Shown here piece by piece: positions 59-64,000 of a DNA stretch of 64,000 nt; the first letter of the stretch is position 1; each line of letters opens with the position of its first letter. A program made the translations under genes and the position numbers. The notes under the pieces are model-generated. The model was not told the DNA's origin. It ran no database searches and worked only from the letters and a program-made list of their open reading frames with translations. Source of the stretch: Macrostomum lignano (Eukaryota); NCBI GenBank assembly GCA_002269645.1, contig NIVC01001954.1, positions 1 to 64,000 on the forward strand. The letters are read 5' to 3'.

Positions 59-3000
59 ATCATGGAGCCAGTGGTGGAGAACATCGGCAAAGGCCACTAA
101 ACTGCAGGACACAGTGTCCCAGATGAAATCGGTACGAACAGCGCGCTTAGTACTTGACGAAAAATTCACGTTGCCATTGCTCAGTGTAGCTATTTTGTTT
201 GAATCTAAAACACTTTCAGGGAAACAAAGAGTATTATGAACAGGAGATCATTCTCAACACTAAGCTAAAATCGTTGGCTGTTAATCTCAGCCTGCTGTGG
301 GGCGCGTCACAACACGGTGAAAGCGCAATTGAAGGTCAACTCCAATAGAGGTAGTGCAGTCAGTACTTTTACAACTTTTATGCCTCACTACAGTAAGGAT
401 GCTTAATCGTACATTTGCACTACTGTCTGACTGTCGCACGCAGAGTACACCACAATCGGAGGCGACGAGGCGCTGCCCCTCGACGAGGAGTTTCAGAGTC
501 ACGTGCGCTGCCTCATCGGCATGGGCAGCCGGAAGCCTGAGCAGCGGTACAAACTGGCGCGCTGCTGGTCAACGGACTCAGGTAGGGCGGTTAAACAAGA
601 TTCATTAAACGAATCCCTAGCTGATCTAGGAATTTAATTATTCAACCCGAAGAATCTGTGCGACAACCAGCGGCACCACCCACGTGCCAACTACGAGCAC
701 GGAGACGAAGCTCCGACGCGAGCAAGAGCGCCTGACGGTTCGCATCCTGCAGATTCTGCGCGCCTTCATGCACAACGAGGAGAGAAAACTCCCGGCTGAC
801 TGGGAGGTTCGAACCACGGAGTTTCGAGTGAAAAAGTGAGTATAGAGACCTTATATAGGAGTATTAGTGAAATGCCTTTCTCGGGCAATATGGTGCCAGT
901 TGCCTCGTTAGCGCAGTAGGTAGCGCGTCAGTCTCATAATCTGAAGGAGTTCGATCGTGAGTTCGATCCTCACACGGGGCAAAACTTTTGTCTTATTTTT
1001 TCTACTCATTTTTAAATAAATCTCTCTAGAGATCTAGATGACGACAATTCATCATTCAAGAAAAAACTTTGTTAGAATTTTTACAACGCAAAATAAATCG
1101 ATTTTCAGGGGCCTTCGCAACATATCGGACATTCAAACAACGCTCAACTCGTTCGAACTAGTGAAGCACGCTTTGCCGCATCTGGCTTCCACCAGCAGCC
1201 TAGTAGCCAAGGAGGTGCTTTCACTGCTTGGCATGATGCTGTTTAACGCTAATGAGAGGGTTCAGGTATGTCACGCATATTTCGTAAAACAGTATAAAAA
1301 ACACACACCTTACTACTTAAAGCAATTAACCTAATTTTGTTATTCCAACAGGAGAGCATGCTGAACTACTTTCTACACACGAAGGAAGAAGTGTTCTTTT
1401 ACGCGGTGCGAAATCGCCTGCAGATGTCCACGGCCAACATCAAAGAGCGCCGTCTGCTGATCTCGCAACAAAAGGCGCGCCAGTCAGAAGCCAAATCTCA
1501 GGCTGAGAACCTCAGAGCTACCATGACTCTAGGGATCAAGGCTTTGCAGGTGAGACGGAGCTAATGTGAATGGATAGCATGAAATGGATTTCGGTTTGGT
1601 CTGACAAATTTACCAAGTGACAAGCTGGTAGGGCACCACAACCGCTGTAGTTGACTTTAGGTGACCCGGAGAGGGCGTCGCAACAGCTGTTGGTGACATT
1701 AGTAACCAGAGAGGGCATCACAACCAGTTATTGGTGACTTTAGTAACCAGAGAGGGCATCACAACCAGTTATTGGTGACTTTAGTAACCAGAGAGGGCAT
1801 CGCAACCAGCTATTGGTGACATTAGTAACCAGAGAGGGCATCGCAACCAGCTATTGGTGACTTTAGTAAACCAGAGAGGTCATCGCAACCAGCTATTGGT
1901 GACATTAGTAACCAGAGAGGGCATCGCAACCAGCTATTGGTGACTTTAGTAACCAGAGAGGGCATCACAACCAGCTATTGGTGACTTTAGTAACCAGAGA
2001 GGGCATCACAACCAGCTATTGGTGACTTTAGTGGACCAGAGAGGGCGTCGCAACCAGCTATTGGTGACTTTAGTGGACCAGAGAGGGCATCACAACCAGC
2101 TATTGGTGACTTTAGTAACCAGAGAGGGCATCACAACCAGCTATTGGTGACTTTAGTAACCAGAGAGGGCATCACAACCAGCTATTGGTGACTTTAGTGG
2201 ACCAGAGAGGGCGTCGCAACCAGCTATTGGTGACTTTAGTGGACCAGAGAGGGCATCACAACCAGCTATTGGTGACTTTAGTGGACCAGAGAGGGCATCA
2301 CAACCGCCATTGGCGACTTCGATACTACGAGTACACCTGCTCGCTCATGCCCATACTGTTTAAAGCTCGTTTCGTTTTAAATTTGAAAATCGACCATCAT
2401 AATTAATCGTGCAGCAAATCAAGCAGTACCGCATCGAGATGAAGATTGAACAGGCCAACAATGATCTCACGGTAAGGCCTAACTTATGCTGTATCTTTCA
2501 CTCGTTAGCACAGAGAAGTCACTATGAACAGAGCAAGACAAATGATAGAATTCTTGGTTAACTGCAGCGCCGAGTCAGCCTCACCAAGATGCAGTCGCAG
2601 TCAATGATGACCAAACGTCGCAAAGAGTCTGGCAGTCAAACGCCGAGCAACAGCAGTGGCAAGAAGAGCGGCGGCAGTGGCAACAAGAAGGTGGCATTCG
2701 CCAACGGGCTGAAAGGCGAGAGTCAGGAGCCGATGGCGCAGAGCCTGCTGGAAGAATCGGCCAGCTCCGACTCCGGTGCTGAGGTGGTGAGTCTCTGTGT
2801 TTCAAATGTTTCCAGTCAAATGCAAGTACAAAGTAAATTTGGCTGTCATTGCAGCTGGCTAACAGTTCAAAAAGGGAAATTTTCGTCAGAAGGTGTGCCA
2901 CAATTTAGTTTTTGTGTGCAATATTATTGTTTGTTATTATTTACTATTACTATTTACTATTATATATATTATTATTGTTATTATTTACTTTAGTTAATTA

Positions 3001-6000
3001 AAGTATTGTAGTTGGGAATAGGACGCGAAACCGCTCCAAAAAACTAAAGAAAAAGAAGTCGAATGTCAATTGTTGGTTAAATATTATTTCAATGCAATCG
3101 TCCTATGCAAAGTGGTGCATTATAGACACGCGGAAAGTCAATTGCCAGCGCTCTATCCCGACAGGAAAACCTGGCTAGCCAGACTCACGATGAAGATGAG
3201 ACGATCTCTATGAAAGACGACGGCTACATCGCCCTGGTGCTGAAGGTCCTGGCCAGCATCTGCGACGGGCAGCACTTTGGTCTGCAGAACTACCTGCGCG
3301 AGCAGCCGGACAACATCAAGTCGTTCAACATCGTGGCCGAAGTCTCCCAGTTCATCAACGTTGCCTACTCGAATATCAACGGTGACACGATCGATTTGCT
3401 CATCCAGCTGTTCTCCACGGTTAATGAGTTCTGTGCTGTGAGTTGCTTTGTCAGCTGGGTTGCTCAGATGGCTGTGAGCACCTGGTGTACAGTAAGAGAG
3501 GTCAGATAGGACCAAGATTTTCTGGATCGGGTCTCATCCTACCGATCGAGTCTGCAACACGAGCCTTGACGGAAAGAGCGCAATGGATTTGAATCTATAC
3601 TCACAAAACGGCCTCGTTTTTTCATTGATGGAAACTTTTCTCAAACTTTTTAATGGGGTGAGATTTGCTCCGAAAATGAAATCAAAATTAAGAAAGTATC
3701 ATCAGGATCCAGGTTAGGAGGCTTGTTCAGCCTAGAAGTCATTTTTCAGCGGCAAGACCGTGCGATTGATGAGACCTTGTGGTAGCTATTAGTTCTGAGA
3801 AAGTTGTCAAGGTGAGGCCCTTCTTGGTGAAACAAGTCCCATGAGCTGCACACATCATAAGGCTCTGTGCATGAGTCATCTTACCAGGCCATTTTTCAAT
3901 TATTTTAGTTCAGCATCAGCTCTGAGCTCTCGGTAAACCTTGGTACTAGAAGAGCTTCCAGTACACTCCACTTCGGTGTCAAGAAAATGGGAGTTTCTTG
4001 TCATCTCTTTACTTGACTTGACTCAGCTACAGGGGGTTCTGGGCATCCGGATACAGCGGGGAGGCGTCGACGCCCATTGCGCTAACCTCTGACAACCTCG
4101 GGCAGTTGGTGCTGCGGTGTCGCGCAGGGAGATCCGGAGAGTCCAGGAGGTGGATGGTCGCTCGCCCGGTAGCGGACGAGCTGGCAGATATTCTGAGGCT
4201 TTCCAACGTCGGAAAGGCCCGGGTTTGCGCCGAGGTAGGTGAGCCTGTCCTGAGTAAAGGCGGGGCACTCACAGATGAAGTGCTTCGCATTCTCATCACC
4301 GGAGAGGCAGAAGGGGGCATTCCTCATTGCGGATGTTTCACTGGAGGTAACGATGCCTAGAGAGCGAGAGAGGGCCATGGTCACCGCCATGATGTCCCTG
4401 CGGTTTTCTTGTCACCTCCCTCATCCGTGAGTTTCATGTTGAAGTGAGTGTAGTTAATGAGTTTAAAGAAGTTCTCCTGATCTTTGGAACTTAAAAAAAA
4501 TCAACTGGAAAGTCGTCGGATAGGCGAAACGCGTAGACATTAAATGTTTGTGTTGATATTTCTCTTCTTGTTATTCTCCCGGAGTCTTCAATTACTCAAG
4601 AATATTACAGACTACAAAAATCCCGCAAACAATGATCCAGGGCAACCAGGAGAACCGGGCAACCGTGTACGACAACAAAATCATCGACTATATAAACTTC
4701 ATTCTGCGCAGCTCCGACTTCGAAAGCTGCGAGCCTCAGCAGGTGGTGCAACTGCGCCAGACCATCGCCAACCTGGTGATCTCGCTGATTGAGGAGAATT
4801 CTCCCGAGGCTCTGGTAATCGCTAGGGAGGTGAAGGACACGCTGGACAAGGGCGCTCTCTACCGGCCATGTCCGAGTGCTACGAGGCCCAGCAGCGGACT
4901 GGCAAGGACGGCGGATTCCTTGTGCGACTCTTTGTGAGTTGGAGCGACCTGACGTCTCAGATGCGGGCGCTCCGTTTGCCCTGCGTTTGGGGAATGATCC
5001 TGAGGGATCTCGACGGGACCATTGGTGATCGTCAGAATCCCATAATGATTTCCATCACCAGAATCCTATAATGGTTTACATCAGCAGAATCCCATAATGG
5101 TTTACAGCACCATAATCCCATAATGATCTCCATCACCATAATCCCATAATTATCTCCATCACCAGAATCCCATAATGATCTCCATCACCAGAATCCCAAA
5201 ATGATCTCCATCACCAGAATCCCATAATGATCTCCATCACCAGAATCCCAAAATGATCTCCATCACCAGAATCCCATAATGATCTCCATCACCAGAATCC
5301 CAAAATGATCTCCATCACCAGAATCCCATAATGATCTCCATCACCAGAATCCCAAAATGATCTCCATCACCAGAATCCCAAAATGATCTCCATCACCAGA
5401 ATCCCAAAATGATCTCCATCACCAGAATCCCAAAATGATCTCCATCACCATAATCCCATAATGGTTTACATCACTAGAATCCCATAATGATCTCCATCAC
5501 TAGAATCCCATAATGATCTCCATCACCAGAATCCCAAAATGATCTCCATCACTAGAATCCCATAATGATCTCCATCACCAGAATCCCAAAATGATCTCCA
5601 TCACCAGAATCCCATAATGATCTCCATCACCAGAATCCCATAATGATCTCCATCACCAGAATCCCAAAATGATCTCCATCACCAGAATCCCATAATGATC
5701 TCCATCACCAGAATCCCAAAATGATCTCCATCACCAGAATCCCAAAATGATCTCCATCACCAGAATCCTAAAATGATCTCCATCACCATAATCCCATAAT
5801 GGTTTACATCACTAGAATCCCATAATGATCTCCATCGCCAGAATCCCATTTCAGCCCACTTCGCCAACCCATTGCAGAAGAAGGAGGAGAACCGCGAGCT
5901 CAAGGAGGCCATGTGCGAGGTCGGCTTCACGTTCTACGTGATCCTGGCCCGGCTGTACGACATTGACCCGGCCATGGGCAAGAAAGGTGAGTCCATCGCC

Positions 6001-49902: not shown

Positions 49903-49975
49903 TTCCAAGTGTTCTAATGGATAAGGCGTCGGTTTTCGGAGCTGAAGGTTATGGGTTCGAATCCCATCTTGGACA
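49903..49975 (+). tRNA. tRNA-Arg(TCG)-like gene, possibly a pseudogene
   Basis: Cloverleaf: acceptor TTCCAAG/CTTGGAC (first pair mismatched), D-loop TAATGGATAAGG, anticodon stem TCGGT/GCTGA with loop TTTCGGA, perfect T arm ATGGG-TTCGAAT-CCCAT, TTTTT terminator at 49979. Confidence 0.75.
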
Positions 49976-52335: not shown

Positions 52336-55300
52336 ATGTCGAACGTTGACGTCGAGTACTTATCACGTCGTGACTTTAAAAGCGACTCTGTTTTGGATAG
52401 AAACCCGAAAACGGAAGAAAGCTCTCTGTCTGATTTTCTTTCTCGTGTTCTTCCCACTCTCGAACACGTCGAACTACCGAAGATGGGAGAGTTGGACCCA
52501 GAGTCCCTGCTAAATTTGCTTGCAAACCAGAAGACTACTCAAGCTAGCGGTATTCGTGGATCGGAATTGAGCGACAGTGCGTCATGGAGGCCGATTCTTG
52601 GCTGTGGACTTGCGACAAGAACAGAAGGTACAGAAGCATTTGGTGATGCAAATTTTAGTCTTCAAAGTTTGGATCACTTGTCAAGTTCTGCTACCCAGTC
52701 TGCGACTTCATCAGCTGCTGGAACTTCTGCCATTGAACAAATGACAGCCAGTGCCGATTTTGACAACCAGCTGCGACAGGCCACCTTTGAGAATAGGTCC
52801 CGCGATTTGTTTCAAAGACTAATAATGCAAGCTTCAATTGCTCAGGGCAAGCGACAGATAACAATTACTGAGCGCATTCAAGTTCCATCATCTGATCATG
52901 TGGCTGAAATTGTTGGCAAGAATGGTAAGTGTGTTTGTATTTTTGTATATTTTTCTTAACATCAATCATCATGAGATATGGCAAATCATCTAGGCCTAAT
53001 CTAAATAATTTTGTTTTTTATTTATTTTCAATATATAAAAATAGTTGAAATTTGACATTTAAAATATAGTTTTTTAGTGTAAAAAATTCCTCTTTGAGAA
53101 TTAATTGTTGCTTGCAAATATTTTATTTTTAAAATTTCTTATTTAGTAATTTAATTAGCATATTGTCTGGATTTGTAATCTGTAAATTTAAAATAAGCTT
53201 CTTTTATTTAAGTATATTTTATATAAGTTTTTTTAGATTAGAATAGGCCTATTTTGAATTTTAATATTTAAAACTTATTTTCTTTCTAATTACTGGTTCA
53301 TTTATTTTTTTATTTAGCTAATTTTAACTTATTTTTTACTTATTCCAGGCCTCCGCATCAAGCAGATCCGTGAACACTTGAAGGTTTGGGTCAAGACACC
53401 AACAAGAGATGAGCTGCCTATCTTTGAAGTCACTGGAGTGCCAGATAAAGTTGCTGAGGTGAGTCACTGTTGCTTAATTTTTAATTTTCCAACTAATGCA
53501 TACGAGGGGCACTAGATAAGTTTTTAGCTGCGGTCAAACCGTTTATTCAAATTAGGCCATATTTTCTGAGCATATTGAATAAGAAGTTTTATCATGGTCC
53601 CCAAAGTTTCATGCACCTAATTGTCACCATTCTCTCACTGTCGCATTTTATCTCAACAAGGTCTGTGACTCTTTCAGCACTGTAATGGAGCTCAATCGTG
53701 AACACTTTCGTGCCATGATTTTCTACGATTTTAAGAGCGGCTTGACATTTCACCAGTGCCACGAGCGGCTGTCTGCTGCCTTTCCTAACCTTGCGCCATC
53801 CATCGCCACCGTCACCGCCTGGTTCCGGGAGTTCAAGCGTGGCCGAGACAGCTTGGAAGACGAAGGTCGAACCGGCCGACCTGTTTCAGTGACGACACCT
53901 GAAACTATCGACCGCGTGCGGCGCATGATTGAGGCTGATCGGCGAGTGACGTATCAAACGATTGAGGCATGTCTTGGAATCTCATCGCCGACAGTCGCTT
54001 CTATCCTTCGTGATCACCTCGCTGTCCGCAAGCTGACCAGTCGCTGGGTGCCGCATTTGCTCACCACCGAGCAGAAGCAGGCCCGCATGAGCTGGTGCCA
54101 GGAAATGCTGGACAGGTTTGGCGGAGGGACGTCGAAGTCTGTCACAGACATTGTCACATGTGACGAAACGTGGGTGTATTGCTACGAACCCGAGCGGAAA
54201 TGCCAGTCGCGTGTGTGGGCTTTTGAAGATGAAGCCCCGCCGACCAAGGTTGTCAGGGGTCGGAGCACTGGCAAGCAAATGGTGGCAACTTTCTTCCAAA
54301 AGACTGGCCACATTGCGACTGTAGCACTCGAGAGCCAGCGCACAGTGACTGCAGATTGGTACTGCACCGTCTGCCTGCCGCGTGTCATCAGCAGCCTTAA
54401 AGAGGCGCGGCCAAAGTGCGGCGTTCGAGGTCTCTGGCTGCACCAGGACAGCGCCAGTGCGCACACGGCGAATCGAACTCGAGAGTTTCTACAGACGGTG
54501 GGCTTCCAGCAGCTCAGTCATCCACCATATTCACCTGACCTGGCACCGTGTGACTTTTTTTTATTTCCATTCATCAAGAATTCCATGCGAGGGTGCCGAT
54601 TTTCCTCCGCCGAAGAGGCTGTTGATGCCTATAGATCGGCCGTTGAGGGGGTATCCCACTCAGAGTGGCGCCACTGCTTTGAAACTTGGTTTGAGCGGAT
54701 GAGGCGGTGCATCCAAGCTGATGGAGAGTACTTTGAAAAGCTCTGAAATTTTCATCTTTATAACTGTTACATGTCGACCGCAGCTAGAAACTTATCTAGT
54801 GCCCCTCGTATTAAGCATATAAAACTTGGCACATTGCCAAAAATACAAGAACCACTAAATTGTGCTTAAGTCATTCAACAAATAGCCCACAATCAATTGT
54901 TTGCAGGCGATCCGAATTCTGCAGCAGATGAGTGAGCACTTTACCCGGGTGCAGCAGGAACGTCAGACTCGCACTGAACCCACTAGAGTGGAGGAGCGAC
55001 TGTATGTTGAGCAGGACAAGGTCGGCCTCATTGTGTGCGCCTCTGGCCAGACCATCCGCTGGGTGCAGCAGCTCTCAGACACGCACATCGCCACGCCGCG
55101 CAAGCAGGAGAAGCAGCCCGGCCTGCGCACCTGCTTCACCATCTGCGGCACCAAGGAGCGGGTCCAGTTTGCCAAGCAGCTCATCTCCGAGTACGTTGCC
55201 ATGCGCTGCCCAGGCCTGTGGCTCGAGCCCAGCTTGCCCCGCTCCGTCGAGGCTCTCAAACTGGTGGCCGATTTTCATCAGGTGCGCCAGACCAAAGCTG

Positions 55301-55701
55301 AGTCGGCCGCCCCGACTGTCAGCGTCACCCCGGCTGCCGGACCCGCCGCCGCTGCTAGCACCGACGATGTCGGAGCTGACGCCTGCATTGGGATCGCCCA
55401 GATGTCACTGCTGAACGAGCCCCAGCAGCAGCAGACCCTGAAGGACGCCCGCCGGCTCTGGCCGGAGCAGGAGCGGCCGAAGCGCCTGTGGAACAGCGCC
55501 CTTTTCTTCGGCGGCCTCGCCGAGCAGCGCCGCTACTCTGCCGACACGCCCGTCAGCCCCATCACCCCCGCCGGAGCCGCCGGCGCGACCGCTGACTGGC
55601 CAACAGCCGAGCAGCTGGCCTCGCTGAAGAAGGTCAGAAGCAACGAGCAACTTGGCGAGTCGCCAGCACCGAACTCAGCCGCCTTCTCTGGCTGGATGTG
55701 A
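52336..55701 (+). CDS. MEX3: MEX-3-like KH-domain RNA-binding protein, 3 exons, about 497 aa, no RING
   Basis: join(52336-52924, 53349-53458, 54907-55701) with consistent phases. KH1 VPSSDHVAEIVGKNGLRIKQIREHLKVWVKTPTRDELPIFEVTG...SEHF parallels MEX3 VPSSEHVAEIVGRQGCKIK..IKTPVRGEEPVF. KH2 VGLIVCASGQTIRWVQQLSDTHIATP. Confidence 0.85.
53503..54808 (+). mobile_element. Full-length mariner DNA transposon (1306 bp), probably irritans subfamily
   Basis: 33-bp TIR CGAGGGGCACTAGATAAGTTT(T/C)TAGCTGCGGTC (1 mismatch), TA on both sides (53501-2, 54809-10), single transposase ORF. Confidence 0.97.
53685..54746 (+). CDS. Mariner transposase, 353 aa, DD34D
   Basis: Uninterrupted ORF with HTH region, WVPHLL, VTCDETW, HQDSASAH and YSPDLAPCD. 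I count 34 residues between the second and third catalytic Asp. Confidence 0.97.
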   Translation: MELNREHFRAMIFYDFKSGLTFHQCHERLSAAFPNLAPSIATVTAWFREFKRGRDSLEDEGRTGRPVSVTTPETIDRVRRMIEADRRVTYQTIEACLGISSPTVASILRDHLAVRKLTSRWVPHLLTTEQKQARMSWCQEMLDRFGGGTSKSVTDIVTCDETWVYCYEPERKCQSRVWAFEDEAPPTKVVRGRSTGKQMVATFFQKTGHIATVALESQRTVTADWYCTVCLPRVISSLKEARPKCGVRGLWLHQDSASAHTANRTREFLQTVGFQQLSHPPYSPDLAPCDFFLFPFIKNSMRGCRFSSAEEAVDAYRSAVEGVSHSEWRHCFETWFERMRRCIQADGEYFEKL

Positions 55702-58088: not shown

Positions 58089-58718
<630 letters not shown>

Positions 58719-59514
58719 GTATGGATGTATGTATATTTCAGATTTATAGATATACATGCCTTTGTTAGTATCTGAAAACTTTAATCTTCCAACGCTCTGC
58801 ATATTTGTGGACAACTTAAACATATCCAACATAGCGTACAGAATATCTATAAGACATACCATGACTCAAGGTATGAATCACGATCGAGAGGGGATTCGTC
58901 AAGGCGATGACTGCTGCTGACCAGGGTGCCTGGGCATGACCTCACTTCTTGTCGAGAGCCAGTGCAGCAGTGACTGATTGGCCCAGTGATTTATGGAGTG
59001 TCGTCATCTCCGTACAATGCGCTGGCTCAGCAGAGAATTCCCGTCTTGTGCGTGCTGAGTCAGCCGATTTTGCTTCCTTCTAATTTTTATCGCGTAATTC
59101 ATACGAAAGAGCCATATATTTCTACTAACAGTAAGCATTTGGCAAAGAACGCGGAAATATAAATCACAGAAAAGCAGAATGATAAAAAGGAATTCCACGA
59201 TTCTATAATAACGAAAAACGCTATTTTTACTACTCATCGGATTTCCCTGTTGTAAGTAGGGTAAATCATGAATTTGAAGGATTTGAAAAAGGGACAAATC
59301 AATTTGATTATTGCCTTGATTCTTGTCAAGTGGAAATTTTCCCTAATTTTCTGTCTCGTTTGTTAAACTGATTTTGCGAGACTAAACGCAGTTAGAAACG
59401 AAATCGGAATGAAAAGAATGAAAAAACAAATATTTGACCCTAATTCTGCCACAAAGCGGTCCTGTATTCAGGAAAAAATGCTGTTAAAATAGGAAAACTT
59501 CAGTTGCCGCTCAG

Positions 59515-59582: not shown

Positions 59583-59942
59583 AGCAGGAATAACTCAACT
59601 TTCTATGTGTGCTCAGCCAGAGGAAGGCAATCCCAAAGTTTGCAGGTTCAATAGGTTCATTTGTGCCACCTGGTCCAGGTTAGCAACCAAGGGAAAGGTG
59701 AGAGAGGGACTTGTGCAGGTATTTTTTAGCTGGGAGATTTTTCGGTGCCTAACGAAGCCTGGCTGTTGATTCGCAGGGCCTCGGGGGAGGACCAGCATTA
59801 GCGGCCGTCGGATCCGGTTGAGTTCTCCGCTGCAGACAGGCAGACAGGCAGACTGACACTCAAGATTACCTGGTCTCTCTCTCTCTCTATTTTGCAAGCG
59901 AAAGCCGTTGGCGCACTGCTGCCCGCCTCAGCTAGGCCTGCA

Positions 59943-62090
59943 ATGTCTGAGTCGCCACCGTCTGGAGACTCCAGTAATGCCGCCGGCTCCCAAGAGGCCG
60001 CCACGAGCGACCCCAGCGGCGAGCTGGCGGCGCAGCTGCACGACGCTGTGCGAGACAACCAGCCCGACAAGCTGCGTCAAGTGCTGCTGCGGATGGTTGA
60101 AATTGCCGGCGCTGGCGCCATTGAAGCGCCAGATGACCGCGGAGACTCGGCGCTGCACGCGTGCGCCGCTGCCGGTCTGACCGAGTGCGCCGAGCTGCTG
60201 CTGACGTTCGGCGCCAATGCGGACCGGCCAAACTCGGCAGGCGATCGGCCGCTCCACCTGGCCGCAGCGGCGGGCGAGCGCAGCAAAGGCGTCGCCCGCG
60301 AGCTGCTCCGGTGCGGCGCCGATCCGACTCAACTCGACGCCATCGGCGACAACGCGCTGCACGTGACCTGCTACGCCGAGTGTGGCCGCATCGCCGACCT
60401 CCTGTTGCGGGCAAAGCCTTCCATTGTCAACAGTCGGAATAGCAGCGGCAGCACTGGCCTGCATATTGCCGCCTCGTGTGAGAATCATGAGCTGCTTGGC
60501 CAGCTGCTCTGTCACGGTGCCGACTTCTCTCTGGCTGATAGTCGCGGCCAGACGCCGGTCGATTTGCTGCTGCAGGGCCCGGACACATCCGGCATCGACT
60601 GCCTCGGCAGGCACCTGATGCGCCGCCTTCGACAGTTCAATAACGGCCAGGACATAATCGGGGTGTTCGCCTCTTTTGAAGGTCGCGAGTTCGTGCGCCA
60701 GTTGCTGCTCATTGACAGCGACATTGGTGGACATTCAAAGAGAGCTGAAGCAAAGGACTTGGACCCGGAGGGCTTGGTAGCCGAGGAAGATGAAGAGGCG
60801 GTGAAGCAGCGGCAATGGCAGCTGTCCAGGCTTGAGCTGGCTGCCTCCCGTCGCACCGTGGACGCCAAGCAGCTCATTGATGCTCTGATCGCCGCCTTCC
60901 AAGCCGGATTGAGCTGCAGCCTCGAGTCCAGCGGCCTGCTGAGTCGGATTGCCTGGCAGCTGTGCCAGCTGGTGCTGTTTGCCGAGAACACGCGCCTGCT
61001 GAAGCGGCTGGTTGAACATCGGCACCTCTGGAGAGCGCTCTCCCGCCAACTGGAGGTTGCCATCGACAAATTGTATGCCAAGACGTTGCGCAAGCAGAAG
61101 GCAGGCGTGCGCGAGCTGCTCCAGCAGCGGTGCTGCATCGACGGCGGCACTTCGATCTCGTTTGCAAGGCTCAACAAGCTGCTGGCCGAGCTCACCACTT
61201 ACTGGCAGTTCGCCAGCCGCCAGATGGTGTTCGACTTTGGAGAGCGACGCGGCGGCGACGACTGGTGCCAGAAGCGGCCGCTCCGAGACCCCGCCCAGTC
61301 GCTGGTGCTGTGGGCGATCTTGAGCGGCCGGCCGGGCCTGGTGCCCATCTTGCTGCAGCAGGAGGAGTTCGACCTGGTGCCGCTGGCCTTGCTCGCCGCG
61401 ACGCTGCTCCGCTCACTGGCACGTCGACGCGACATCGAGGACGTGTTCGCTGACCGGGCCGGTCGCATCGCCGACATCTGCGAGGCGATGGCCGTCAAAG
61501 TGATCAAGCAGGTGAAGGAGGTTGACGATTCACCCGGCAACTGCCTCACCATCAGCTACGTGAGTATGCCTCTGCCCAACTACGCTAACTACACGATTCT
61601 TGACCTGTCTGCTCGAGGCGGGGCGGGCAGTTTCATCAAGCTGGACATTGTTGAACTGGCAACGGAGAAGAACTGGTATGGGGACTTTTTCAACTTCCGC
61701 AAGCCTGCCCTGCGCGAGCTGGTGATTGCGGCCGGGTTCGTTCCACCGCTGCTGCTCTTCCTGCCCGGCCTGCTGCGCCGGTTCCGCGGTCCCGGCACGC
61801 GCGCCTTCCTCGACTCGGTGCTCAACGATTCCGGACCAACCGAGCATCCGGGCAACTGTCCGGAGACGTTCCGTCTGCTCGCCTCGGATTTCCAGGTGGC
61901 CAGACGCCGACGCCGACGACAGGACTCTGAACTGGAAGCGCGCAGTCGCCGCCTGTGGCAGCGAGCGAGCGAGTTCGGCAGCGAGCTGGCGCTGTTTTAC
62001 AACACGCCGTGCGTCAAGTTTCGCTTGCACGCGGCGGCCTCGTTTGTGTTCATCGGCCTGCTGTCCTACGTGATACTGCACGACTTTCAG
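59943..62090 (+). CDS. Ankyrin-repeat TRP-like (TRPM/TRPS-related) cation channel, large coding exon; gene continues beyond the window
   Basis: 716 codons from ATG 59943 to donor CAG|GTGACC at 62090. About 4-5 ankyrin repeats (GDSALH, GDRPLHLAA, GDNALH, GSTGLHIAA, GQTP). MHR4-like DPAQSLVLWAILSGR..LALLAATLLRSL, NYANYTILDLS..FI..WYG. Pre-S1/S1 FYNTPCVKF...FIGLLSYVIL. Confidence 0.82.
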
Positions 62091-62257
62091 GTGACCAGCG
62101 GCTCTGGGAAGGGAGCAATCGATGAGGAATGAAACTGGGAAGTGGGAAATCAGCACTGTTTCTCGTCCAGAATCATGGATCGGCAATCTTTTATACCTTC
62201 AGGGCCAGATAGATATCCAGTTCATTGCTGCAGGACATTTTAATTGATTTAATTGGA

Positions 62258-62525
62258 GGGGCCGTAGCCCAGCAGTCTAGCGCGGCGCTCCCATGTTCCA
62301 ACGGCCCAGGCTCGATTCCAAGTGCAGTCACATTCATTTGGGGGCTAAATTGGAATCTCGGCCTGGCTCTGCTCGTGCAATTAACGGTCTTGAGGGCCGA
62401 CCCCCAATGCACAGTAAAATGTACATGCCTAACGATAAATAACGCTGGGACCGCTGTACACTCCTGTGTGAGTGTGTGCCTGTGCGTATGACTGCGTACG
62501 TATCCGCGCGCTTGTGTGCCTGCTC
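62258..62525 (+). mobile_element. tRNA-derived SINE-like element
   Basis: A-box-like TAGCCCAGCAG, B-box-like GGCTCGATTCC (about 62310), and 3' core TGTACATGCCT...GGACCGCTGTACACTCCTGTGTGAGTGTGTGCCTG shared with 37285-37533. Confidence 0.65.
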
Positions 62526-62914
62526 ACTGTGCTCAGGGGCGAGTATATTTTTTGTCGTGATAAATCTTAGAGGTGTAACTTAATACGCAGCGTACAGTAT
62601 TGTTTAACTTTCATTGTCTATGGTTGAGGTCCACAGAAGGGGTAAACAACGGGGAGAAAAAGTACAACGATAAATGGATAATCAAGCTGCTACAAAGAAC
62701 TGCTACACAGCAATGCCTCTCGCCGGTTGTGTGACAATGCCACTTAAAGTGCGCCAGGGTGCACACTGCTACCCTGCCTCTAATAAAAAATGGTTAATTC
62801 TATAGATTTGGTACTGCAGACGAGGAGGGAAGAAAGGAACACGAACAAAAGATAAGAGGAAGGAGACAGAAAAAAAAGATGTGAAAGGGAGGAGCGAGGA
62901 GAGATTATAAAATA

Positions 62915-64000
62915 TTTGTGAAGAGGTGGAGGGAGAGAGAAGAGAGAGCAGAGCAGAGAGGAGATGGGGGAGAGAGAGAAGAGAGAGAAGAGCAGAGAGG
63001 AGATGGGGGAGAGAGAGAAGAGCAGAGAGGAGATGGGGGGAGAGAGAAGAGAGAGCAGAGAGGAGATGGGGGAGAGAGAGAAGAGAGAGCAGAGAGGAGA
63101 TGGGGAGAGAGAGAGAAGAGAGCAGAGCAGAGAGGAGATGGGGGAGAGAGAAGAGAGAGAAGAGAGGAGATGGGGGGAGAGAGAAGAGAGAGAAGAGCAG
63201 AGAGGAGATGGGGGAGAGAGAGAGAAGAGAGAGCAGAGAGGAGATGGGGGGAGAGAGAAGAGAGAGGAGAGCAGAGAGGAGATGGGGGAGAGAGAGAGAA
63301 GAGAGAGAAGAGAGGAGATGGGGGGAGAGAGAAGAGAGAGAAGAGCAGAGAGGAGATGGGGGAGAGAGAGAAGAGCAGAGAGGAGATGGGGGGAGAGAGA
63401 AGAGAGAGGAGAGCAGAGAGGAGATGGGGGAGAGAGAGAGAAGAGAGAGAAGAGAGGAGATGGGGGGAGAGAGAAGAGAGAGAAGAGCAGAGAGGAGATG
63501 GGGGAGAGAGAGAGAGAGAGAAGAGAGAGCAGAGAGGAGATGGGGGAGAGAGAGAAGAGAGAGGAGAGCAGAGAGGAGATGGGGGAGAGAGAGAAGAGCA
63601 GAGAGGAGATGGGGGGAGAGAGAAGAGAGAGGAGAGCAGAGAGGAGATGGGGGAGAGAGAGAAGAGAGAGGAGAGCAGAGAGGAGATGGGGGAGAGAGAG
63701 AGAGAGAAGAGAGAGCAGAGAGGAGATGGGGGGAGAGAGAAGAGAGCAGAGAGGAGATGGGGAGAGAGAGAGAGAGAAGAGAGAGCAGAGAGGAGATGGG
63801 GGAGAGAGAGAAGAGAGAGGAGAGCAGAGAGGAGATGGGGGAGAGAGAGAAGAGAGAGGAGAGCAGAGAGGAGATGGGGGAGAGAGAGAGAGAGAAGAGA
63901 GAGCAGAGAGGAGATGGGGGGAGAGAGAAGAGAGAGCAGAGAGGAGATGGGGGGAGAGAGAAGAGAGCAGAGAGGAGATGGGGAGAGAGAGAGAAGAGAG
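62915..64000. repeat. Purine-rich (GA) compound tandem repeat, runs to the window end
   Basis: Units like GAGAAGAGAGAGCAGAGAGGAGATGGGGGA with variable GA counts. Confidence 0.93.

Follow-up and report, generated by a model that had tools for sequence, protein, structure and literature searches.

A 5′ coding exon from Macrostomum lignano that probably belongs to an ankyrin-bearing, TRPM_MCLZ-type "TRPM-like" cation channel

Near the 3′ end of a 64,000-nucleotide stretch of the Macrostomum lignano genome (NCBI GenBank assembly GCA_002269645.1, contig NIVC01001954.1, positions 1 to 64,000 of the forward strand; hereafter the window) lies a long reading frame that we take, with a probability of about 0.8, to be the 5′ coding exon of a flatworm cation channel gene from the "TRPM-like" group typified by TRPM_MCLZ. 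Judged from its alignments, the predicted protein is related to TRPM from the MHR4 domain onwards and has genuine ankyrin repeats where SLOG/MHR1-2 would otherwise stand. An earlier note on this DNA, written from the letters alone, had read the same order of domains; that reading proves correct, and the type of gene turns out to be one already in the literature.

The frame is open without interruption from 59892 to 62132 on the forward strand, with its first ATG at 59943 and a TGA stop at 62130-62132. The 716 codons from 59943 to 62090 contain neither a stop nor a frameshift, and the only GT between the codons for transmembrane helix S1 and the in-frame stop is that at 62091-62092 (cag/gtgacc). 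The frame shuts 13 codons past this donor, which follows directly on HDFQ, so the description of the block as "intronless" in the earlier note does not hold. The parts of the exon, and the intron that would follow it, are these:

59943..62090, forward strand: first coding exon, probably of a gene for a "TRPM-like" cation channel resembling TRPM_MCLZ; continuous open reading frame of 716 codons
60012..60578, forward strand: ankyrin repeat domain, five repeats (amino acids 24-212), at the site of SLOG/MHR1-2 in canonical TRPM (Pfam, PDB, AlphaFold, Foldseek)
60579..61271, forward strand: helical linker (amino acids 213-443), conserved in the family (13-member alignment, model)
61272..61733, forward strand: MHR4-type domain (amino acids 444-597), with LVLWAILSGR, LALLAATLLRSL, NYANYTILDLS and NWYG (PF25508, alignments to TRPM1/3/7, hhalign)
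61734..61934, forward strand: variable, probably disordered pre-S1 loop (amino acids 598-664), with an arginine run (low predicted local distance difference test score, pLDDT)
61935..62090, forward strand: pre-S1 helix, FYNTPCVKF (61995-62021) and transmembrane helix S1 to HDFQ (alignment, model)
62091..64000, forward strand: putative intron, phase 0 (after Q716), at least 1.9 kb and running off the end of the window (GT donor)

The ankyrin repeats of the 716-residue product are recognised by several approaches. Pfam places ankyrin families over residues 32-212 (Ank_2 at E 3.4e-21, Ank at E 2.2e-17, together with Ank_3, Ank_4 and Ank_5, the range for these families being 3e-21 to 7e-9), and ankyrin and DARPin entries of the PDB match with a best E of 2.7e-44. 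The model that AlphaFold gives from an alignment of 13 family sequences (pLDDT 75.6; a model from the single sequence reached a pLDDT of 45 and was discarded) contains five helix-turn-helix ankyrin repeats at residues 24-212 with pLDDT of about 85-94, and Foldseek matches it to DARPins and ankyrins with target TM-scores of 0.85-0.87. Foldseek results for the whole model are dominated by ankyrins and DARPins, with NOMPC among the ankyrin-driven matches, and are uninformative on the linker and MHR4. Pfam, the PDB and the model thus agree with the earlier description of about four to five ankyrin repeats, a helical linker, an MHR4-like region and a pre-S1 element within one exon. The earlier limits, about 60140-60570, take in repeats 2-5 and miss a degenerate first repeat that begins near 60012.

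The linker that follows is all-helical in the model and has three residues (D258, L353 and Y378) that are invariant among 13 aligned family members; homology between it and MHR3 of TRPM was not detected, as profile-profile homology to canonical TRPM begins at residue 444. Beyond it, Pfam identifies PF25508, the "TRPM2-like domain", at residues 443-565 (E 1.4e-6; score 29.2 bits, cutoff 27), with a match that starts at model position 139 in the window protein and reaches positions 63-98 in some paralogues. The MHR4 region is folded confidently in the model. It is followed by the pre-S1 loop, which is variable in length, cannot be aligned across the family or against TRPM, and has pLDDT below 50 over residues 619-665, and then by two long helices at residues 665-686 (pre-S1) and 689-714 (S1). 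This last segment aligns with FYNAPIVKF and S1 of TRPM1 and TRPM7 and contains the invariant P689, K692 and F693 of the family alignment; in all, the window exon retains all 26 family-invariant residues.

The domains that would be expected of other TRP types were also sought. Pfam gave no match to SLOG/LSDAT_euk for the window protein or for the members of nine paralogue groups of M. lignano, and LSDAT_euk was found in the canonical TRPMs used as controls (P0016, P0017, P0022 and P0024). A search of the three forward frames between the upstream KH-domain gene and the ATG for an exon encoding SLOG gave no SLOG-like frame and no coding-looking stop-free stretch, and the absence of SLOG from the N-terminus, as first read from the letters, is therefore upheld. 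Pfam gave no match to TRP_2 (PF08344), the TRPC domain, in the window protein or the family members, and Nudix was likewise unmatched throughout the family. TRPS (soromelastatin) channels combine SLOG and Nudix domains with a divergent TRP box 2 and are sister to TRPM in trees; the window family lacks both of these domains. The possibility that the ankyrin exon is a separate neighbouring gene was ruled out, since the ankyrin repeats and MHR4 lie in one frame and their order is kept in all relatives.

When the non-ankyrin part of the product was compared to all PDB sequences, 39 distinct sequences were found at E <= 10, and every one is a TRPM. The best is TRPM1 (PDB ID: 9or5; E 7e-8), with residues 448-712 lying on TRPM1 654-895, from MHR4 via the pre-S1 element into S1. 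This alignment pairs LVLWAILSGR with LMVWAVLMKR, LALLAATLLRSL with KALVACKLYKAM, NYANYTILDLS with NWSNSTCLKLA, NWYG with MWMG and FYNTPCVKF with FYNAPIVKF, and thereby recovers each of the TRPM motif parallels that had been quoted for this DNA. For the closest relative of the window gene, Mlig004154 of M. lignano, the best 60 PDB matches of the non-ankyrin part are likewise all TRPM (the 60th at 76 bits), and TRPM3 aligns to it at 114 bits in one alignment that runs from MHR4 to the TRP helix. Alignment of the family with seven SLOG-type TRPMs by hhalign gives a probability of 100% and an E of 1.7e-70 for a match that starts at residue 444, in MHR4, and stops where the TRP helix ends, and leaves the ankyrin repeats and the 230-residue linker without a counterpart in canonical TRPM. 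No TRPC chain is among the PDB matches listed for the window exon or its closest relative, a hemichordate TRPA1 is undetected by the family channel-core profile even at E 10, and the EWKFAR TRP box of TRPC is absent in the relatives, where the TRP helix reads LWxFERY with the spacing of TRPM. The grouping of the relatives' channel core with TRPM, and not with TRPC, TRPA or TRPN, which the earlier note had proposed to check, is supported by these comparisons.

An exhaustive HMMER search of representative proteins with the non-ankyrin part returned 25 cluster representatives at E <= 1e-3, the ten best being all from Macrostomum lignano. The top match, P0001 (PAA53095.1; Mlig004154g2), has an E of 7.6e-152 and 56% identity over the non-ankyrin part, and P0026 (PAA86244.1) is a longer allele of it. 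P0001-P0007, P0009 and P0010 all have N-terminal ankyrin repeats and PF25508, mostly with Ion_trans and none with SLOG; P0008 has PF25508 alone. The M. lignano members, which are annotated merely as hypothetical proteins, make up at least nine paralogue groups with less than 50% identity. Ankyrin repeats and a channel are also combined in weaker matches, found in two flukes, Opisthorchis and Dicrocoelium, and in a read-archive assembly, and canonical TRPMs that bear SLOG (a starfish TRPM, P0016 of M. lignano and others) score lower in the same search.

The relatives also indicate what the remainder of the window protein would look like. In the family alignment the window exon stops inside S1 and the relatives go on through S2-S6, with six transmembrane helices and a helical C-terminal tail in those that are full-length. 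Their pore loop reads MVGEY, and its VGEY filter aligns with YGE in the TRPM profile, the filter of the divalent-permeable TRPM1/3/6/7. In S2/S3, the positions that coordinate Ca2+ in TRPM2/4/5/8 are occupied by E, E, N and D, and the TRP helix, LWxFERYDLxxEFxxRSxLPPP (LWxFERYDLxEEFxxRSxLPPPLNIL), is spaced as in TRPM. Two observations on M. lignano proteins may be added here. P0001 and P0026 differ by a frameshift just after S6, at about 13118-13130 of contig NIVC01003136.1, such that P0001 (985 residues) loses the TRP helix and P0026 (1112 residues) retains it; the cause is an error of assembly or else the degeneration of one copy. P0016 (NIVC01000307.1, 3001-22147) is a canonical 19-exon SLOG TRPM in which an Ank_2 match (residues 133-219, 32.9 bits) precedes SLOG; one exon (residues 197-288) spans both, three allelic models are equal in length, and the protein may be an ankyrin plus SLOG form relevant to the rise of the ankyrin-only clade.

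The architecture just described is that of a known group of parasite channels. (S)-Meclonazepam opens Sm.TRPM_MCLZ (Smp_333650) of Schistosoma mansoni, a cation channel with 1,380 residues, three exons and a long N-terminus of ankyrin-like repeats (PMC10788528), and TRPM_MCLZ has been described as having no NH2-terminal MHR1/2 or SLOG, with ankyrin-repeat modules in their place (PMC11731825). The group has been named "TRPM-like"; in schistosomes its gene has three exons with the entire channel in exon 3, in Opisthorchis, Clonorchis and Paragonimus this channel exon is duplicated as 3a/3b, and F/H/Y variation at an S4 site is tied to meclonazepam sensitivity (PMC12861061). We note that an Opisthorchis viverrini protein, P0014 (KER32702.1), has two full channel cores in tandem (residues 677-990 and 1354-1674) because exons 3a and 3b of this opisthorchiid TRPM_MCLZ have been joined in a single protein model.

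Fluke and tapeworm orthologues with 41-76% identity were found by searching with the Dicrocoelium protein. P0067 (CAH8438365.1) and P0135 (CAH8481013.1) have the accessions of the TRPM_MCLZ of S. turkestanicum and S. bovis (PMC10788528), and the Pfam layout of both is ankyrin repeats and Ion_trans without SLOG. By BLASTP the window exon matches S. bovis TRPM_MCLZ at 28% identity over 134 residues in MHR4 (E 4e-13), and P0026 matches the same protein at 25% over 614 residues (E 6e-46), collinear from MHR4 to the TRP helix. A profile of the family MHR4 scores TRPM_MCLZ orthologues at 113-127 bits, compared to 29-68 bits for SLOG TRPMs.

Trees (neighbour-joining, 300 bootstraps, 142-305 columns) tell much the same. 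In a tree of the relatives' channel cores the ankyrin-bearing group is separated from SLOG-TRPMs with 97-99% bootstrap support, and the nine M. lignano groups are monophyletic at 100% (84% with an outgroup) and sister to the read-archive assembly proteins plus the neodermatan TRPM_MCLZ. In an MHR4 tree, which includes the window sequence, the ankyrin group has 100% and the pair of the window sequence and P0026 has 99%. The two read-archive proteins, P0015 and P0011 (Logan DRR639838 contig, 1298-4516), are ankyrin-TRPM-like and are themselves sister to the neodermatan TRPM_MCLZ clade; they may come from another free-living flatworm. On the strength of these matches and trees the window gene reads as a member of the flatworm TRPM_MCLZ or "TRPM-like" clade and not as a new chimera. 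The replacement of SLOG by ankyrin repeats is specific to the flatworm lineage and already published; of the chimeric or lineage-specific architecture proposed in the earlier note, the restriction to flatworms stands and the novelty does not, since ankyrin repeats joined to MHR4 have been described for this clade (PMC11731825, PMC12861061, PMC10788528). The link that had been drawn to the target of praziquantel goes as far as both being flatworm TRPM-type channels, as TRPM_PZQ keeps SLOG.

The macrostomid family and the TRPM_MCLZ of schistosomes, flukes and tapeworms have in common the N-terminal ankyrin repeats for SLOG/MHR1-2, MHR4, the pre-S1 element, an intron-poor gene and, as seen in full-length relatives, a TRPM-type channel core and TRP helix. 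They differ in that identity between them is 25-28%, in that macrostomid proteins have about 1,000-1,370 residues compared to 1,380 and a more compact ankyrin region, and in the positions of their introns. Macrostomum has many copies, in nine groups, whereas each of the parasites had one TRPM_MCLZ orthologue cluster in the searches made. Residue H946 in S4 of S. mansoni TRPM_MCLZ, which sets meclonazepam sensitivity, is replaced by Phe in Mlig004154, for which reason sensitivity to the drug would not be expected to extend to it. Canonical TRPMs (TRPM1/3/6/7, TRPM2/4/5/8 and TRPM_PZQ) share MHR4 and the pre-S1 FYxxPxVKF with the window family and, by way of the relatives, S1-S6, an acidic pore filter, the acidic and amide residues of S2/S3 and a TRP helix of the form WxFxRYxLxxxFxxRxxLPPP; the window family differs in having no SLOG/MHR1-2, no detectable MHR3 and neither a NUDT9H nor a kinase domain. 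Genes of the ankyrin family have two to three coding exons, compared to 19 for P0016, a canonical TRPM of M. lignano.

The neighbourhood of the exon supports the relationship to Mlig004154. Two exons of a KH-domain gene (52336-52959 and 54901-55701, forward strand) lie about 4 kb upstream of the channel gene in the window, and on contig NIVC01003136.1 Mlig004154g2 is preceded by a KH-domain (KH_1) gene on its own strand, at a distance of about 7 kb. The window KH exons are 50-52% identical to that gene, and the window channel exon is 52% identical to Mlig004154 over 690 aligned residues, with the same domain order. As the KH gene and the channel gene are equally diverged, the two segments appear to be orthologous rather than paralogous within one genome, as if they came from two macrostomid species or from deeply diverged loci, and we regard Mlig004154 as the closest relative and probable syntenic orthologue of the window gene. 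An intact mariner/Tc1-type transposase frame (53685-54746, forward strand, 353 residues; HTH_48, Transposase_1, DDE_3) lies between the two KH exons, apparently in an intron of the KH gene that is about 1.9 kb here and about 1.1 kb in NIVC01003136.1.

The ratio of nonsynonymous to synonymous substitution rates (dN/dS, Nei-Gojobori) between the window exon and Mlig004154 is about 0.32 overall (0.41 in the ankyrin repeats, 0.46 in the linker and 0.20 from MHR4 to S1), values to be read with synonymous sites near saturation. The window exon is under purifying selection. Its G+C content (GC) is 0.64, and 0.79 at third codon positions (GC3), and the KH exon has a GC of 0.655 and a GC3 of 0.81, compared to 0.39-0.52 in non-coding flanks. 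Because the neighbouring KH exon matches it, the GC-rich block has an ordinary coding composition; retroposition of the window gene as the cause of this block, as had been suggested, was ruled out on these grounds, and being intron-poor is a trait of the whole family.

Mlig004154 has a 2.7-kb first exon (residues 1-889) followed by one intron in the pore loop (after residue 889, phase 1) and none in S1, where the window gene has its putative intron; an apparent second break in Mlig004154 is the frameshift difference between alleles. The two introns do not coincide, and the nearest introns of P0016 are 19 and 10 residues off. Indeed, no intron position is common to the family members examined or to the 19-exon canonical TRPM. 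The clade as a whole may go back to an intron-poor or retroposed ancestor, and because no intron position is shared in the family, an intron-poor, possibly retroposed TRPM copy may have been joined to an ankyrin exon. A tblastn search of the window 3′ of 62090 with P0026, P0002 and P0003 at E <= 10 found no downstream channel exon; the remaining exons of the window gene would lie past the window's 3′ end.

Several points weigh against the assignment to a TRPM_MCLZ-type channel gene. PF25508 is barely over threshold in the window protein, and the channel properties come from alignment and the schistosome channel only. In the trees canonical TRPMs are sparsely sampled and TRPS, TRPC and TRPN are missing; the single outgroup is a distant TRPA1 picked up via its ankyrin repeats, with which the support for the ankyrin plus TRPM_MCLZ group falls to 78%, and the clade may sit inside TRPM or beside it. 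The window stops 1.9 kb past the exon, within repeats, so that S2-S6 of this copy would lie beyond it. Mlig004154 has no intron where the window frame closes, and the codons past the donor (VTSGS) loosely resemble its GTASS (6 of 9 bases match, and an indel comes next). Because of these last two points a 3′ truncation is possible: the window copy could be a pseudogene or fragment that ends at the stop at 62130, its channel part having been removed or displaced by a repeat or transposon. We consider this unlikely. It would fit with Mlig004154 reading straight through in its first exon while the window frame closes 13 codons past HDFQ, with DNA 3′ of the exon that consists of repeats and has no channel homology, and with a window saturated with tandem repeats and carrying a mariner element. 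However, the 716 codons have no stop or frameshift, 26 of 26 family-invariant residues are kept, and dN/dS is 0.2-0.46 in all three regions. The donor, CAG/GTGACC, is a good one at a protosplice-like site (CAA/GGC at that place in Mlig004154), intron positions vary among family members, and the window ends before a next exon could show. We attach no significance to the resemblance of VTSGS to GTASS, and we place the reading of an intron at 62091 well ahead of that of a truncated copy.

The assignment to a TRPM_MCLZ-type gene also has to be set against two other accounts of its architecture. That it is a new, undescribed chimeric TRP might be argued from a survey of TRPM and TRPS which says that both are without ankyrin repeats (PMC7306681), from a 2026 survey of metazoan TRPMs that contains no flatworm terms, and from the label "hypothetical protein" on the M. 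lignano members; yet TRPM_MCLZ has been published with the same architecture and the window gene groups with named TRPM_MCLZ orthologues, which makes this highly improbable. We give even less credence to a channel of the TRPC, TRPN or TRPA type with a superficial likeness to TRPM. The layout of four to five ankyrin repeats, linker, pre-S1 element, six transmembrane helices and TRP helix with LPPP does resemble TRPC, whose cytosolic N-terminus likewise has a small number of ankyrin repeats, then linker helices and a pre-S1 element, and NOMPC is among the ankyrin-driven structural matches. But once the ankyrin part is set aside all PDB matches at E <= 10 are TRPM, as are the best 60 of the relative, PF25508 is present and TRP_2 is not found, the spacing of the TRP helix is that of TRPM, and the family core profile misses TRPA1. 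With TRPC in particular there is no sequence or profile match and no EWKFAR box.

If the exon does belong to a TRPM_MCLZ-type gene, then by alignment and by comparison to the schistosome channel the full protein would be a tetrameric, Ca2+-permeable, non-selective cation channel, with its gate coupled, as in TRPM, via the interface of MHR4, pre-S1 and TRP helix. The membrane-proximal coupling layer of TRPM would have been retained and the distal, nucleotide-binding layer swapped for a ring of ankyrin repeats. Because the SLOG module, which binds ADP-ribose or nucleotides, is replaced, control from the cytosol might be expected to act via protein contacts on the ankyrin ring rather than via bound nucleotides. 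The pocket within S1-S4 could bind small ligands, by analogy to meclonazepam in the schistosome channel.

The rest of the window is rich in repeats. A tandem array of a 55-bp unit occupies 13587-36176 (22.6 kb, 411 copies, 98% matches), a third of the window, and the region 1630-51289 holds more than 15 further minisatellite arrays. An (ATCT)n microsatellite (58089-58722, 158 copies) ends 1.2 kb upstream of the channel ATG, and a GA-rich repeat with a 188/216-bp period covers 62929-64000 and runs past the 3′ end of the window. Genes for tRNA-Met (CAT; 901-982) and tRNA-Arg (TCG; 49903-49975) are predicted, both on the forward strand. In the putative intron a tRNA-like stretch near 62255-62330, not called by ARAGORN, may be a tRNA-derived short interspersed element.

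In the literature that mentions TRPM_MCLZ we found no members from free-living flatworms, the papers treating parasites and one preprint human TRP channels, and ankyrin-bearing TRPM channels are not described in two broad surveys of TRPM and TRPS (including PMC7306681). An expansion of the TRPM_MCLZ type in a free-living flatworm thus appears to be undescribed. With somewhat worse than even odds, we suggest that macrostomids hold a large, old expansion of this type, sister to the clade that contains the neodermatan TRPM_MCLZ genes; that the whole clade dates from the base of the rhabditophorans; and that it may have arisen from an intron-poor, possibly retroposed TRPM copy running from MHR4 to the C-terminus that was joined to an ankyrin exon, with P0016 as a possible relic of an intermediate form.

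Clear cases of one domain replacing another are few in the TRPM lineage, and the exchange of SLOG for ankyrin repeats is among them; general surveys say that this lineage is free of ankyrin repeats. The macrostomid members would date this architecture to before the origin of the parasitic flatworms. The TRPM_MCLZ of the parasites is a validated drug target of meclonazepam, and a free-living, tractable genus that has both orthologues and an expansion of these channels would offer a laboratory model for what they sense.

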